Positions 13,616-44,107 of a stretch of DNA of 64,000 bases are shown here, piece by piece; within the stretch, counting starts at the first letter, position 1, and each line of letters opens with the position of its first letter. The stretch is taken from contig NC_042999.1 of the NCBI RefSeq assembly GCF_006345805.1, positions 9,610,001 to 9,674,000 on the forward strand. The letters run 5' to 3'. Made by a program: the position numbers and the translations under genes. Source of the DNA: Octopus sinensis (lineage: Eukaryota). The notes under the pieces are model-generated. The model did not search any database. It was not told the DNA's origin and saw only the letters and a list, made by a program, of their open reading frames with translations.

Positions 13616-13718
13616 CATACATACATACATACATACATACATACATACATACATACATACATACATACATACATACATACATACATACATACATACATAC
13701 ATACGTACGTACGTACAT
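13616..13718. repeat. (CATA)n microsatellite
   Basis: Direct inspection. Confidence 0.97.
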
Positions 13719-13896
13719 AATTCGTACTTTACAAGTGCGATCTGTGAGTGGAACAGTAAAAATATTCAAGACTTTTCTCAAATTCCAAATGTGAATTTTT
13801 CTATGTTAACTACATCCCAAAGACGGAGCCTTGTACCTTTGTTGGAAACCGGCTCCCTCCTCAGTGGAAGATTTATAATAATTAAAAAATAGAAGA
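13719..13896 (+). mobile_element. R4-type REL LINE, short 5'-truncated 3' end (CATA family, copy 1)
   Basis: Translates IRTLQVRSVSGTVKIFKTFLKFQM*. It is homologous to the reverse complement of 41763-41945 and is flanked by (CATA)n on both sides. Confidence 0.8.
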
Positions 13897-13962
13897 CATA
13901 AATACATACATACATACATACATACATACATACATACATACATACATACATACATACATACA
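13897..13962. repeat. (CATA)n microsatellite
   Basis: Direct inspection. Confidence 0.97.
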
Positions 13963-14225
13963 TGCATGGTGGTAGTCTACTTATGCAGACCTCAGATCCA
14001 TCATGACGTTTAATGTGGCTTTTTAAAACCAGACAATGTATTGAAAAGACACCCACATAGATTGCATATCCGATTTGGACCACCAAGAGCTGCAGTCAAG
14101 TTCTGATCTTTGTGGGTCTTAAAATATCTTTTGAGGCCTCCATTAGATTTGCAGACCTTATGGTATACACGGCATTGAAAGGTGTGCACATGTCTATATA
14201 GACAGACTCGTTGGTGGAGGTTCGT
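13963..14225 (-). mobile_element. RTE-like LINE 3' fragment with two C2H2-like fingers
   Basis: Minus-strand translation FQCRVYHKVCKSNGGLKRYFKTH...RICNLCGCLFNTLSGFKSHIKRH resembles RTE C-terminal fingers. It runs into (TATG)n. Confidence 0.6.
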
Positions 14226-14675
14226 ATGTACATATGTACATTTTATATAATACTATTATCTTGCAATAAATCCTCCATTATTTTAACTTAATATTTTCAT
14301 TTTATTTCCATTTTTTTCTTCTCGCTTTGCCCAAATTTTCCCAAATGTTCATCGAATGAAGAAGAGTGTCTCCATCCCCACCCACCCTCTGCCCTGGTCG
14401 GTAAATGTATGGTTTATAGCATCTGCTTATCTGTTTGTTTTATATTTTATGGCCTGTCCAGACTTCTAGATCAAATTTCTACTGAAACTATACATGTCTG
14501 TGTGTATGTGTGTGCGTGGAGAGAGAGAGAGAGAGAGAGAAAGAAAGAGAGAGAAAGATAGAGACAGACAGACAGACAGACAAACAACAGGTAGATAGAC
14601 AGACTGACAGACAGACAGATAGACAGATAGATTGACATGTAGGGAGGCAGACAGGCAGGTAAGCAGGCTTACATA

Positions 14676-14915
14676 TGAAGTTACATTCCATAAGTTTTGA
14701 GACATTTTCAGAAGCGACATTTATTAATGATTTTAGAGTAAAAAACTCTAATCTCGTTCAAAGTCGGATCCTCTAACTTCAATGCATTTGTAGTGTTATA
14801 ACCACTTTGTGGAGGCTCCATGGAAGTCCTCCGAAGTGGTGAAGGCGTCCAGAACCCTTATCACAGCTTCCTTCATCTTCTCAATGTCTCCCAAACGACT
14901 GGCCCTGAGGTCCTC
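14676..14915 (-). mobile_element. mariner transposon 3' remnant with TIR
   Basis: KEDLRASRLGDIEKMKEAVIRVLDAFTTSEDFHGASTKWL*HYKCIEVRGSDFERD* matches the mariner transposase C-terminus (KCIE..G.YFE). TA|TGAAGTTACATTCCATAAGTTTTGAGAC is TIR-like. Confidence 0.75.
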
Positions 14916-40445: not shown

Positions 40446-40754
40446 CTATGTGACTAAAATAAAATATCTTCTCTTCATTTCTTTTTGTTGGTGGTGATGA
40501 TGGATCTATTTTTTACTAATGCTGTTCCTCGTATTTGTATGTTTTTGATTTCTCTATCATCTTCGATATTTGTAGCGACCCTCGTAGATATTTCGCTGTT
40601 ATATTAACGAGGCCGAAGAGACTTGGTCGAGGTTTCAAGCGCTGCTTTATTACCTCTTTGTTACTCTATTTCACTTATCGTCTGCCGCTCGCAAACTAAG
40701 CGATATTAATTTAACGGGGAAGGAACGAGCAAGAGGTTTTCAATTCATAGTATA

Positions 40755-41405
40755 TGATAGTGTGTGTGTGTGTGTTTGTGTACGTGTGCGTGTGTGCGTG
40801 TGTTTATGTATGCATGCATGTTTGTATACGTATGTATGTGTATATGTGCATATATATGTATGTTGGCATATATGTATAAATATATATATAAATATATATA
40901 TACATGGCTCTGTGCGTGTGTGCGTTTGTGAGGTTGTTTGTGTGTGTATGTGTGCGTGTGTGGATGATATACTTGTTATATACACATATATACAACCACT
41001 CACACAGACGCAATATAAAAAGCAGACAGACGGAAAGATTGATAGATAGATAGATAGATAGATAGATAGATAGATAGATAGATAGATAGATAGATAGATA
41101 GATAGATAGATAGATAGATAGATAGATAGATAGATAGATCGGTAGATAGATAGATAGATAGACAGACAGACAGACGGATAGATAAACAGACAGACAGACG
41201 GATAGATAGATAGACATACGGATAGATAGATAGATAGATAGATGGGTAGATAGATAGATAGATAGATAGATAGACAGACAGACGGATAGATAGATAGATA
41301 GATAGATAGATAGACAGACAGACAGACGGATAGATAGATAGATAGATAGATAGATAGATAGATAGATAGATAGATAGATAGATAGATAGATAGATAGACG
41401 GACAG
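40755..41405. repeat. (TG/TA)n followed by a ~370-bp (GATA/GACA)n array
   Basis: Direct inspection. Confidence 0.97.
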
Positions 41406-41654
41406 ACACCGAGAGAACAAGATGACGGAATATTTATATTTTTGACGAATCAAAAAAAAATGGTGGATGCAAGGATCAATGAAGAATATGTTTGTATCGA
41501 ATTCTTGGTGGGCGGTTGAGTAAACGACTTGCGGCATTTTATAAACTAATTTACTTTGATTAAATAAATGATAATTAGATACTGACGCCAATTAAATCGT
41601 CCAAGACCGACTAATAATCTATAGAATGGTTTATAAATGTGTATGCCTGTGAGT

Positions 41655-41762
41655 TTGTATGTATGTATGTATGTATGTATGTATGTATGTATGTACGTAC
41701 ATATGTATGTATGTATGTATGTATGTATGTATGTATGTATGTATGTATGTATGTATGTATGT
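41655..41762. repeat. (TATG)n microsatellite
   Basis: Direct inspection. Confidence 0.97.
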
Positions 41763-43985
41763 CTCTTTTATTTTTTAATTATTACAAATCTTCCACTCAG
41801 GAGGGAGCCTGTTTCCAACAAAGACACAAGGCTCCATCTTTTGGATGTAGTTAACACGGACAAATTTGCATTTGGAACTTGAGAAAATTCTTGCACATTT
41901 TTACTGTTCCACTCACAGATTGCACTCGTAATGTACGAATTAGTCGGTCGATTTCTCTTTCTGAAAGTCCCAGTTTATCCAGATTCTCCTTTAAGCATTT
42001 ACTAAGAAAACCTAGTACTCCAATTATTATTGGTATGAATATGAGTTCATAGTCTGAATATCGAAGCTGGAGGTTTCGAAGCAGTTATCCATAGTTATCC
42101 TCTTTTTCTTTGACTTTCAAAGAACTTTCAAAGAAATATTTATATCTGCAGGGCAGCTGACCTCTATGATGGTACATACCTCTTTCTCTCTGTCTCTTTG
42201 TCCCTCTGACCTTTATGATGGTACATAGCTTTGCCCTTCTGTCCCAAACAACAATATCCGTCCTGTTACGTTTACATTTGACAGAAGCTTTGATGGGAAT
42301 ATTCTACCAGTATTCCTTGAGTTGGTGTTTGTGAAGGTATTCTATAACAGAGGGATTTTCTAAGTTTATTTTAGAAAAGTCTTTTTTGCGGATAGCATTT
42401 TAAATTGTTTTAATGACAACATTGTGCCACATAGGGAGGTAGTACCGTGACGACGTTTTAGGACAGGTGTTAATCACATGCGTGATGTCTTCCACAGGAG
42501 CATGACATACAATCGCGCCTTGGGATTACAAGAGCGTCACTGTCTCTCTTGTTCACCAGGTACTTTGTGGCAATCTCCTGTTCCTGAATTGCAAACGTAT
42601 AACCTTCGAAATATGATGTGATGTAGTGGTCTTGTGTCCAAGAGAGACTGTGCTTGTGTCAATTCTATTGTCTTCTTCAAGCTTCCGGGCAACAAACCCA
42701 TGCATAATCGTTGTTTGTTTTGTTTTTTTTGGGTGGGGGAGGGGGGTTGTATGCTGAGTGATTTCCATCCAGTTCTTCTCAGAGGTAAGAGAGCCCAGCT
42801 GTTTTGGGGTTGTATAGGAGATTATCAGGAAGAAAGTGCTTCCTGGAAAGTTCACTGCCAACTCCTACAATGTTGCTCACTTCACTTTTCAGGACTGCAT
42901 TTATATATTTATTTTTGCTGCTGTTGTTTAGCAGGTGCTGCTTGAGTGATACCATACGACATTCGAAGGCCGTCTGCACTGATCCCAGGCCTCTACCACC
43001 TTCATTTCTTCTTAGGTAGAGCCTGTTAACCCACTGCTTCTATGGAAGTTCCCAGTTGTTATAAGGATTTTGCGGGTTTTGATATCTATGGAGTCGATTT
43101 CCTCTACAGACCAATCAAGTATCCCAAATGTTGGGATCAGAACTGTTACTGCAAATGCATTGTGAGATATTGTTTTGTTGTAAGAAGAGAGTCCCGACTG
43201 CCATATTCTCCCAAGTCTGGTGTAATATTCTCGGGTCACTCTATTTTTATTCCCAGTACCCTCATATAATATATATTCATCTATGCCAAGGTACTTGTAA
43301 CATTCTTTGTGTGGAATGGGGGAGGTAGAGAGACCGTTGATGCACAGGTTTGGGGTTTGGGGGACTGACTTTTCTCGTTCTATAACCAAATATGAACATT
43401 TCTTTTGGCCAAATTCCATGCCTATATCAGCTGAAAATGTTGTTATTAATTCCGGTTGTTTTTGTTTTGTTTTTTTGTTTTTTGGCATTGTTTAGACTTT
43501 TAGCATAAAATTATGAGTTACATAAGAAATTATGAGCTACATTGATATTTCTGGCAGTTGAAGATCCTAGCATGTAACCATTAGTTTTCTGCAGTAGGAA
43601 CGATGATGGATTCAGTACCAAAATGAAAAGAAGTACTGAAAGACTATCTCCCTGGAATATTACTTTCGTAATGTCTATACTATAAGAAACAATTATTCTA
43701 TTCTCAGTTGTAAGGGTAAGAAGAGTTTTCCACCTCTTTGTGAGTCTCTCTATGGCAGCAATTATGGTGGTGGGTACTTTGCCGGGTGCAGGCACTTCAA
43801 CAGCAATGACTGAGGAATAGAGTCGAATGTCTTCTTATCGTCAAACCATACTGTCACAAGGTTTCTGCGTTGTTTTCTTCCGACAGCTTTGTTTAGTAGG
43901 AGCTGTTCGGCACATCCCCGCACTCCCCTTCTTTCCACCAGTCATAGTGTTGTTCGGCTCACAATACTCGTGGAGGAATTGGTTG
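41763..43985 (-). mobile_element. R4-clade REL-endonuclease LINE, 5'-truncated and decayed (CATA family, copy 2)
   Basis: The minus strand gives, in order, GCAEQLLLNKA..NLVTVWFDDKKTFDSIP, IFQGDSLSVLLF, MEFGQKKC, YKYLGIDE, DWSVEEIDSIDIKTRK, a CCHC-like segment (EDITHVISTCPK), REL (NRTDIVVWD...IEVSCPAD) and IPIIIGVLG...VSGTVKMCKNFLKF. Confidence 0.85.
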
Positions 43986-44107
43986 ATGTATGTATGCGTA
44001 TGTATGTATATATGTATGTAAGTATGTGTATGTGTGTATATATATATTATATATATATATATATATATATATGTTATCGTGTATGCATATATACATATGT
44101 ATGCATA

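Follow-up and report, generated by a model that had tools for sequence, protein, structure and literature searches.

Probable (CATA)n-specific insertion of R2-like retrotransposons in an octopus genome

The stretch of DNA considered here, the window, comprises 64 kb of Octopus sinensis contig NC_042999.1 (positions 9,610,001 to 9,674,000) and is eukaryotic sequence extremely rich in microsatellites, with debris of short and long interspersed elements (SINEs and LINEs) and of mariner transposons. It contains three fragments of retrotransposons without long terminal repeats (non-LTR) that belong to the restriction-like endonuclease (RLE) type, at 13720-13895 (plus strand), 37930 to about 38126 (plus) and 41763-43985 (minus), called here copies 1, 2 and 3. 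The question raised by this locus is why every one of them starts at a (CATA)n repeat: the elements may have sought out the repeat, made it, or come to lie beside it for other reasons. Our data indicate that the copies are, with high probability, dead members of two related families that integrate in one fixed orientation into (CATA)n·(TATG)n. The evidence for this comes from the anatomy of the copies, their repeat flanks and orientation, the conservation of the arrangement across families and genomes, and homology to R2-type proteins.

Anatomy of the copies and their flanks

The longest fragment, copy 3 (2,223 bp, all features on the minus strand), is 5'-truncated and decayed, with at least three frameshifts and at least nine in-frame stops. 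It starts at the beginning of the reverse transcriptase (RT) domain (NQFLHEYC, 43961-43984). This domain occupies approximately 43012-43985 and includes the motifs VWFDDKKTFDS (43819-43851) and FQGDSLSVLLF (43625-43657), a degenerate YxDD region (43514-43531) and DIGMEFG (43408-43428). Further along lie a CCHC knuckle (VCHAPVEDITHVINTC, 42463-42510), an RHN-like motif (42421-42447) and the RLE core at 42208-42267, composed of NRTDIVVWD (42241-42267) and TIIKV (42208-42222). In this core, NR(P>T)D...II(E>K)V, the order of motifs is kept and the catalytic residues are mutated. The C-terminal IPIIIGVLG (42010-42036) and the end of the open reading frame (ORF), FLKFQM (41869-41886), are followed by a 3' untranslated region (UTR) of about 105 bp (41763-41868).

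Copy 1 is a case of extreme 5' truncation: its 176 bp hold the last ~23 codons of the ORF, which ends in FLKFQM (13774-13791; C-terminus ...SGTVKIFKTFLKFQM) with a stop at 13792, and a 3' UTR of about 105 bp with the last letters ...AAAAAATAGAAGA. Copy 2 is a fragment of about 200 bp that starts with an RHD-like motif just after the CCHC segment (PIRYD, 37938-37952) and reaches the RLE motif NRPD, here HNRPGIM (38106-38126), with G in place of the catalytic D. The fragment gives way at about 38126-38168 to a SINE-like piece and a mariner-like transposon, and its 3' part is lost; a search for its continuation beyond these insertions found none. The mariner/Tc1-like transposase remnant (38385-39123, minus strand; ORFs of 187 and 66 aa, ...MTDLSDFQRGQIDGARMAGVS...) lies inside the SINE-like sequence that ends copy 2. 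We take the SINE of the window to be similar to the abundant octopus SINE.

An earlier note on this DNA had regarded the three fragments as copies of one family, and this has to be revised. Over 176-179 bp, copy 1 matches the 3' end of copy 3 at 88.7-88.8% identity. Between copies 2 and 3 blastn finds no match, and over the roughly 200 bp in common they share only about 55% of nucleotides; therefore sequence comparison assigns copies 1 and 3 to one family and copy 2 to a second family of the same clade.

The flanks are as the same note had described them, with three different 5' truncation points, each preceded on the sense strand by (CATA)n. Upstream of copy 1 lies a (CATA)26 array (13616-13719, plus strand; found by Tandem Repeats Finder and in the sequence itself) whose last units are mutated to CGTA and which would be the upstream remainder of the target; before this array there is a SINE fragment and no element 3' end. 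The (ACAT)18 array after copy 1 (13896-13967, plus) would then be the downstream remainder plus any tail. Copy 2 is directly preceded by (ACAT)15 (37870-37929, plus), with 0 mismatches to (CATA)5 in the last 20 nt. The 3' end of copy 3 adjoins an array of about 27 CATA units on the minus, that is sense, strand (41656-41762; the plus strand reads (TGTA)n), and across this junction ...AAAAGAGA passes into CATACATA. Directly upstream of copy 3 in the sense direction, the minus-strand stretch 43986-44030, ending in …CATACATACGCATACATACAT at the junction, is CATA-like and degenerate, a detail of the earlier description that likewise holds; its last 20 nt read ATACATAC-GC-ATACATACAT. This stretch grades into (TA)n-rich low-complexity sequence, and then a SINE.

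Three distinct 5' ends, located at the ORF's end, just after the CCHC segment and at the RT start, therefore each abut sense-strand (CATA)n, and the two intact 3' ends, those of copies 1 and 3, are followed by (CATA)n, also as previously claimed. Perfect (ACAT)n runs of at least 5 units occur five times in the 64 kb and form four arrays, all of which adjoin the copies with the same strand orientation. A 20-mer resembling (CATA)5 stands upstream of about 1% of window positions (both strands counted), and the chance that 3/3 5' junctions fall in CATA is about 1e-6, before the 3' ends and the orientation are counted. As a control, no flanking element is common to the seven (AGAT)n loci or to the window's (AT)n, (AC)n and (AG)n arrays.

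A LINE of another type is also present in the window. It is 5'-truncated, with ORFs of 422 and 230 aa (33242-35178, minus strand; motif YADDT), and is flanked by long degenerate (TA/TATG)n arrays (32702-33144 and 35221-35668, the whole at 32702-35668); this may be a repeat association or a coincidence.

Relatives in (CATA)n and in other repeats

Pfam gave only sub-threshold matches to RVT_1 (E 0.04) and zf-RVT on the separate ORF pieces of copies 2 and 3, and the elements were therefore classified through their relatives. A HMMER search with the 158-aa RT piece of copy 3 against 1.8 billion representative proteins yielded 1,042 relatives, including full-length proteins of 1,050-1,200 aa; the clade is of high copy number (clusters of 100-389 members), and among the named relatives that of the octopod Argonauta hians is the closest. 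All three window fragments are homologues of this one group of RT proteins: the pieces of copy 3 are 31-59% identical to the relatives' RT, copy 2 has 33-52% amino acid identity to relatives in tblastn, and copy 1 has 74% to the C-terminus of relative P0002.

In the relatives the type of element is evident. Pfam detected RVT_1 in seven of them at E 1e-20 to 1e-31 and no AP (apurinic/apyrimidinic) endonuclease domain (Exo_endo_phos) in the full-length ones, and among solved structures the relatives match R2 retrotransposon proteins best (E 1e-24 to 1e-14), in alignments that cover the RT and the CCHC/RHN segment. The columns C-x2-C-x8-H-x4-C, RH, NRPD, E and K show no or almost no variation among 14 relatives, and this set is, judged by its residues, the RLE signature of the R2 group. 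Intact relatives have one ORF of approximately 1,100-1,200 aa that consists of an N-terminal W..W three-helix motif, the RT, the CCHC knuckle and a PD-(D/E)XK nuclease. A non-LTR RT with the CCHC knuckle and nuclease C-terminal to it, without AP endonuclease, without LTRs and with frequent 5' truncation (the three 5' ends in the window and more in relatives), is what is expected of an RLE-type element.

The N-termini of the relatives share the motif R.(N)R.Y....W....N.D........G....R.K.LWD..HP.....K.L...A, modelled by AlphaFold2 as a three-helix bundle (predicted local distance difference test score, pLDDT, 84). No significant match to Myb/SANT was obtained for it in Pfam, in a PDB profile search (which gave only spurious HDAC6 hits) or in Foldseek; the TRF2 Myb domain appeared at no better than E 4.8, and no zinc-finger motif was seen in the relatives' N-termini. 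R4/Dong elements have a divergent N-terminal Myb/SANT-like domain and lack zinc fingers (PMC7998251); the predicted bundle is possibly compatible with such a DNA-binding module. A third-helix residue that seemed to separate (CATA)n from (CTTA)n families (IEK vs I(K/R)K) was rejected when the difference collapsed upon addition of locus L010, and no residue of the N-terminal motif was found to track the target repeat. Rfam, run on 4-6 loci with full-length copies, reported no R2-type 5' self-cleaving ribozyme above gathering thresholds, and at permissive E-values gave only repeat-driven noise from microRNA models.

No copy closer than 66% protein identity was found elsewhere, and the (CATA)n lineage was sampled through more distant relatives with their flanks. 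Six other sequence sets, Argonauta hians among them, contributed at least 10 further copies with same-orientation (CATA)n flanks; five of these copies are full-length (L010, L012B, L013B, L016 and L017), two with intact ORFs. The copy at L010 is bracketed by (TACA)22 and (ACAT)23. At L012, copy A ends at (ACAT)55, and the full-length copy B lies between (TACA)15 and (CATA)9; at L013 a truncated copy A after (ATAC)4 is followed by (TACA)33, the full-length copy B and (TACA)19. The two intact ORFs (1,179 and 1,217 aa between stops) are on Joint Genome Institute (JGI) metagenome contigs, L016 and L017, each of which starts and ends in (CATA)n. L007, truncated in the RT, starts directly after more than 200 bp of (ATAC/ACAT)n. 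The 3' junction of the copy on an Argonauta hians chromosome (L008), where ...AAAAAGAGA passes into CATACACACA (CATAC...), resembles that of copy 3. With the window included, 10 clear 5' junctions lie in (CATA)n, five of them from full-length copies and five at truncation points that all differ, 11 3' ends abut (CATA)n, and CATA is on the sense strand in 13/13 copies.

Two sequences near these junctions deserve mention. Three full-length elements of different (CATA)n-type families share (G)TAGGACGTGT(GGATTA) at 15-55 nt inside the 5' end (L012 4640-4665, L016 ~135-160, L017 ~125-150), and the Argonauta copy has ACACGTGG directly after the upstream repeat. This motif could be an internal promoter element; Rfam found no ribozyme at it. 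A SINE-like sequence of about 110 bp (…GATGCCCGACCACCATTTGCTGAATGGGTTGTT…GGTCCCGAATCTCATACA…), with copies 95% identical, lies beside (CATA)n at L012 (8950-9043) and L013 (9200-9310 and 10003-10115) and might be a non-autonomous passenger using the same target or tail.

The same arrangement is found in sister families embedded in (CTTA)n, that is (ACTT)n, at eight loci (L001, L002, L003/4, L009, L014, L015, L018 and L025). At L009 two full-length copies stand in a row with one truncated at residue ~934 between them, the repeat separating each from the next. Assembly ERZ25878469 holds two (CTTA)n loci (L009 and L002) and one (CATA)n locus (L010), and both specificities therefore coexist, unmixed, in one genome. 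Orientation is constant in 25/25 copies scored over three repeat classes. All (CATA)n and (CTTA)n families fall with full support (Shimodaira-Hasegawa-like approximate likelihood ratio test, SH-aLRT, 100) into one clade of a maximum-likelihood tree built on the RT-RLE region. Within this clade the topology requires the repeat to have changed between (CATA)n and (CTTA)n three times or more; one of these changes is not trusted, as it rests on the short piece of copy 3. The placement of this 158-aa piece beside a (CTTA)n family was itself rejected, the piece being short and decayed; by summed tblastn scores copy 3 is nearest to the (CATA)n family P0192.

The sister clade (SH-aLRT 100) holds insect proteins, namely a 1,279-aa non-R2 protein of Bombyx mori (P0286, 36% identity over RT and RLE) and ladybird proteins. 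Four (TAA)n-associated fragments score best against it: L026, L029, L042 and one in the window at 54815-55685. The latter is an RLE/C-terminal fragment (54886-55685, minus strand) whose 3' UTR is continued without a gap by (TAA)n at 54815-54885, which on the plus strand appears as (ATT)n. An RT fragment of the same type (55682-56279, plus strand) stands head-to-head with it, and the copy at 54815-56279 is therefore inverted or rearranged. (TAA)n being Dong's hallmark, the sister clade is, on these sequence grounds, Dong-like, and the (CATA)n/(CTTA)n clade is its tetranucleotide-repeat counterpart. In Coccinella septempunctata (L011, OU015579.1) ladybird relatives from the sister clade are strung together with (TA)17-57 arrays between them, which suggests that beetles hold a (TA)n-specific family.

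Some further features of the clade concern truncation and the evolution of the arrays. Positions 1-12562 of L001 hold at least five tandem copies of a single 5'-truncated element of the (CTTA)n type, which share one 5' end, two of them with an intact 690-aa ORF, and which are separated by (ACTT)~53-73 spacers with a period of about 2.6-2.7 kb; this resembles a satellite-like amplification of element and repeat together. The name of the contig suggests 2x coverage and circularity, and an assembly artefact is possible. Truncation within about 20 codons at the RT start recurs in four independent families (window 43961-43984, L001 7245, L007 6389, L013 2476) of both the (CATA)n and the (CTTA)n type, around ...YRPIAC.N..YK.YT...FL..HC, and many database ORFs of the clade are 630-760 aa long; this point looks like a preferred stop or joining site. 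The arrays beside elements often contain blocks of single-base unit variants (L009 9709-9987, L010 4505-4767, L002 12798-13009), for example (ACTT)8(ACTA)9(ACGA)51 or (TACA)12(CATC)9(CCAT)9(ACAT)6, as if a mutated repeat unit had been propagated locally; such propagation appears to take place in the arrays flanking the elements.

Origin of the repeat flanks

Of the explanations other than target-specific insertion, the one that survives best, improbable as we consider it, is that the element made the repeats. Its 3' end would carry a (CATA)n tail, the 5' arrays would derive from the tails of copies further upstream, either tail-only or extremely truncated, with later expansion by slippage or unequal crossing-over, and insertion itself would be random. 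If elements seed arrays, every perfect (CATA)n array of the window is expected to touch an element, and all of them do; the tandem array at L001, with its identical truncation points, represents amplification after insertion, and the variant units such as (CATC)9(CCAT)9 or (ACTA)9(ACGA)51 suggest local array evolution. However, an element 3' end was never seen upstream of the 5' arrays, either in the window, where a SINE fragment or unique DNA precedes them, or at the relatives' loci checked, and these arrays are therefore not tails of upstream copies. Moreover, the five full-length copies, 5' UTR included, begin immediately behind (CATA)n, the ten 5' junctions fall at six different element positions, all of them in repeat, and a tail-only insertion would have to land just where the next copy inserts, which is itself targeting. 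The earlier note had argued from independent 5' junctions to target specificity rather than a tail, an argument that gains support both from the junctions of the relatives and from the sister families with repeats of their own.

Still less probable is a passive accumulation, in which a loose preference for AT-rich or unstable DNA is combined with survival in microsatellites, where insertions are harmless. The window is indeed extremely rich in microsatellites of many kinds, and this explanation was proposed for Waldo-A/B near CA repeats in Drosophila (PMC3812793). At that, (ACAT)n arrays are outnumbered 3 to 5 times in the window by those of (AT)n, (AC)n, (AG)n and (AGAT)n, yet the latter are without copies; a loose preference does not agree with the constant orientation of all copies scored, nor with the fact that each lineage keeps its own repeat unit even within one assembly (ERZ25878469). 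Pure coincidence in a repeat-rich genome, for which it can be said that tetranucleotide repeats are common in the window, has next to no chance of being correct, given the probability calculated above for three junctions and the recurrence of the arrangement in six independent sequence sets, and is already contradicted by the comparative data.

Several observations weigh against insertion into pre-existing (CATA)n. No empty site, that is an orthologous uninterrupted array, was seen, so that the arrays presumably, rather than visibly, predate the insertions. The window's own families are represented by three loci only, one of which, copy 3, has the degenerate 5' flank, and the claim for them otherwise draws on relatives. 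At the Argonauta locus L008, some 0.9 kb separate (ACAT)14 from the ATG downstream of it, and the exact 5' boundary was not located, and at L012A and L013C the 5' junctions are ambiguous or parted from the repeat by other sequence. Finally, Foldseek gave no significant match for the N-terminal module, the part that might be expected to bind DNA.

In the cycle of the R2 and Dong type, a single protein binds the RNA and the target and nicks one strand, and the nick primes reverse transcription. Target-specific insertion of the elements described here could proceed along the same lines, with the nick site, the role of the N-terminal motif and the pairing of RNA with target proposed by analogy. 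The protein would bind its own RNA and the repeat and nick the TATG strand; the freed 3' end would prime reverse transcription, possibly paired with CAUA repeats at, or read through at, the 3' end of the RNA. Synthesis would often stop early and leave 5'-truncated copies, and the cDNA would be joined to the upstream part of the same array, which would place (CATA)n on both sides of every copy, whatever its 5' end. Such a mechanism would account for the repeat flanks at all 5' ends, for the constant orientation and for each lineage keeping its own unit.

The units (CATA)n and (CTTA)n differ by one base, and this, together with the three or more changes on the tree, leads to a speculation on pairing between RNA 3' end and target in target choice. 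The target of the clade may be (CWTA)n, with families that have switched between the two repeats at least 2-3 times and the choice set largely by the RNA and not by the protein. An RNA transcribed past the element into the flank downstream would have that flank's repeat at its 3' end, priming of synthesis would require this end to pair with the nicked target, and a single slip to a closely similar repeat would be passed on as a new specificity. We hold this idea to be doubtful. If it is true, the target of an R2-like enzyme would be re-programmable by changing the tail of its RNA. R2-like enzymes are now under development for gene insertion, and close relatives with (CATA)n and (CTTA)n targets offer a natural experiment for mapping target choice in them.

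There are also practical consequences, for the annotation of cephalopod repeats and for the detection of new insertions. What is seen in the window is not one family but part of a clade of cephalopod-type genomes that is large and varied and has some members still intact, and this clade may shape a visible share of cephalopod tetranucleotide repeats, every perfect (CATA)n array of the window being occupied. Insertions inside microsatellites are nearly invisible to short-read insertion callers, which bears on the report that an octopus 'Dong' element shows almost no new insertions (PMC9115989).

Comparison with known systems

Microsatellite-specific RLE elements are not new in kind, and (CATA)n is a further target for an already known kind of site-specific element. 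Known targets are (TAA)n for Dong, (TC)n for Kibi, (TTC)n for Koshi and, for Togen, near NeSL, (TG)n (PMC3812793, PMC4640811, PMC7998251). In the open literature we found no description of an R4, Dong or RLE family specific for (CATA)n/(ACAT)n or (CTTA)n, a family which Repbase or Dfam entries may record, and no remark on repeat targeting in cephalopod repeat papers; for (ACAT)n-type targets only Waldo (ACAY, R1 clade) was found. Waldo elements (WaldoAg1/2, WaldoFs1) insert into (ACAY)n, which includes (ACAT)n (PMC3812793). In contrast to the elements described here, with their C-terminal restriction-like nuclease and R2 proteins as the nearest structures, Waldo is an AP-endonuclease LINE with an N-terminal nuclease and an R1-clade RT, and the overlap in target is a convergence and not kinship.

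The R2 proteins are the best homologues of solved structure (E 1e-24), align over the RT and the CCHC/RHN segment and serve as a model for RLE target-primed reverse transcription. R2 differs in its unique site in 28S ribosomal DNA (rDNA) and its N-terminal zinc fingers plus Myb, and the similarity to it amounts to 59-89 bits, vs more than 400 bits to the Dong-like clade. Kibi and Koshi are microsatellite-specific non-LTR families recognized by the same flank logic, and in them too the targeted unit varies between related families; they are set apart from the octopus elements by description, not by sequence, as having other repeat units and hosts. Both were described from fishes by Kojima and Fujiwara (2004), as cited in PMC3812793.

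HERO and Togen are likewise RLE-type elements with some microsatellite-specific families, and HERO occurs in lophotrochozoans; they are likened here by description, their sequences and the HERO target units lying outside the comparison. Some leech HERO families are microsatellite-specific according to Repbase Reports 2014, as cited in PMC4640811. HERO is the main alternative label for the tetranucleotide clade. Membership in R4/Dong is likely, as judged from a tree that did not include curated R4, Dong, Rex6 and HERO references. The octopus literature labels the abundant RLE LINEs Dong-R4 (PMC13282606, PMC9115989), and a full-length 'Dong' is known in O. bimaculoides (PMC9115989). In the Octopus vulgaris annotation Dong-R4 covers 92.7 Mb, or 3.3% of the genome, vs 8.2 Mb for Hero (11 times) with 14 HERO families; this abundance fits the high copy numbers of the clade and is an indirect argument for the Dong-R4 label.

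The closest parallel is Dong of Bombyx mori with the Dong-like elements (R4 clade). Like these, the elements described here have a single ORF with the RT followed by the CCHC knuckle and RLE, lack an AP endonuclease, are often 5'-truncated and insert into a microsatellite in one orientation. Site-specific insertion into rDNA or a microsatellite characterizes R4/Dong, and the (CATA)n on both flanks in fixed orientation conforms to it. The difference is in the repeat: Dong in the strict sense targets (TAA)n, whereas the three copies of the window are flanked by (CATA)n, and the (CATA)n and (CTTA)n families form a fully supported clade of their own.

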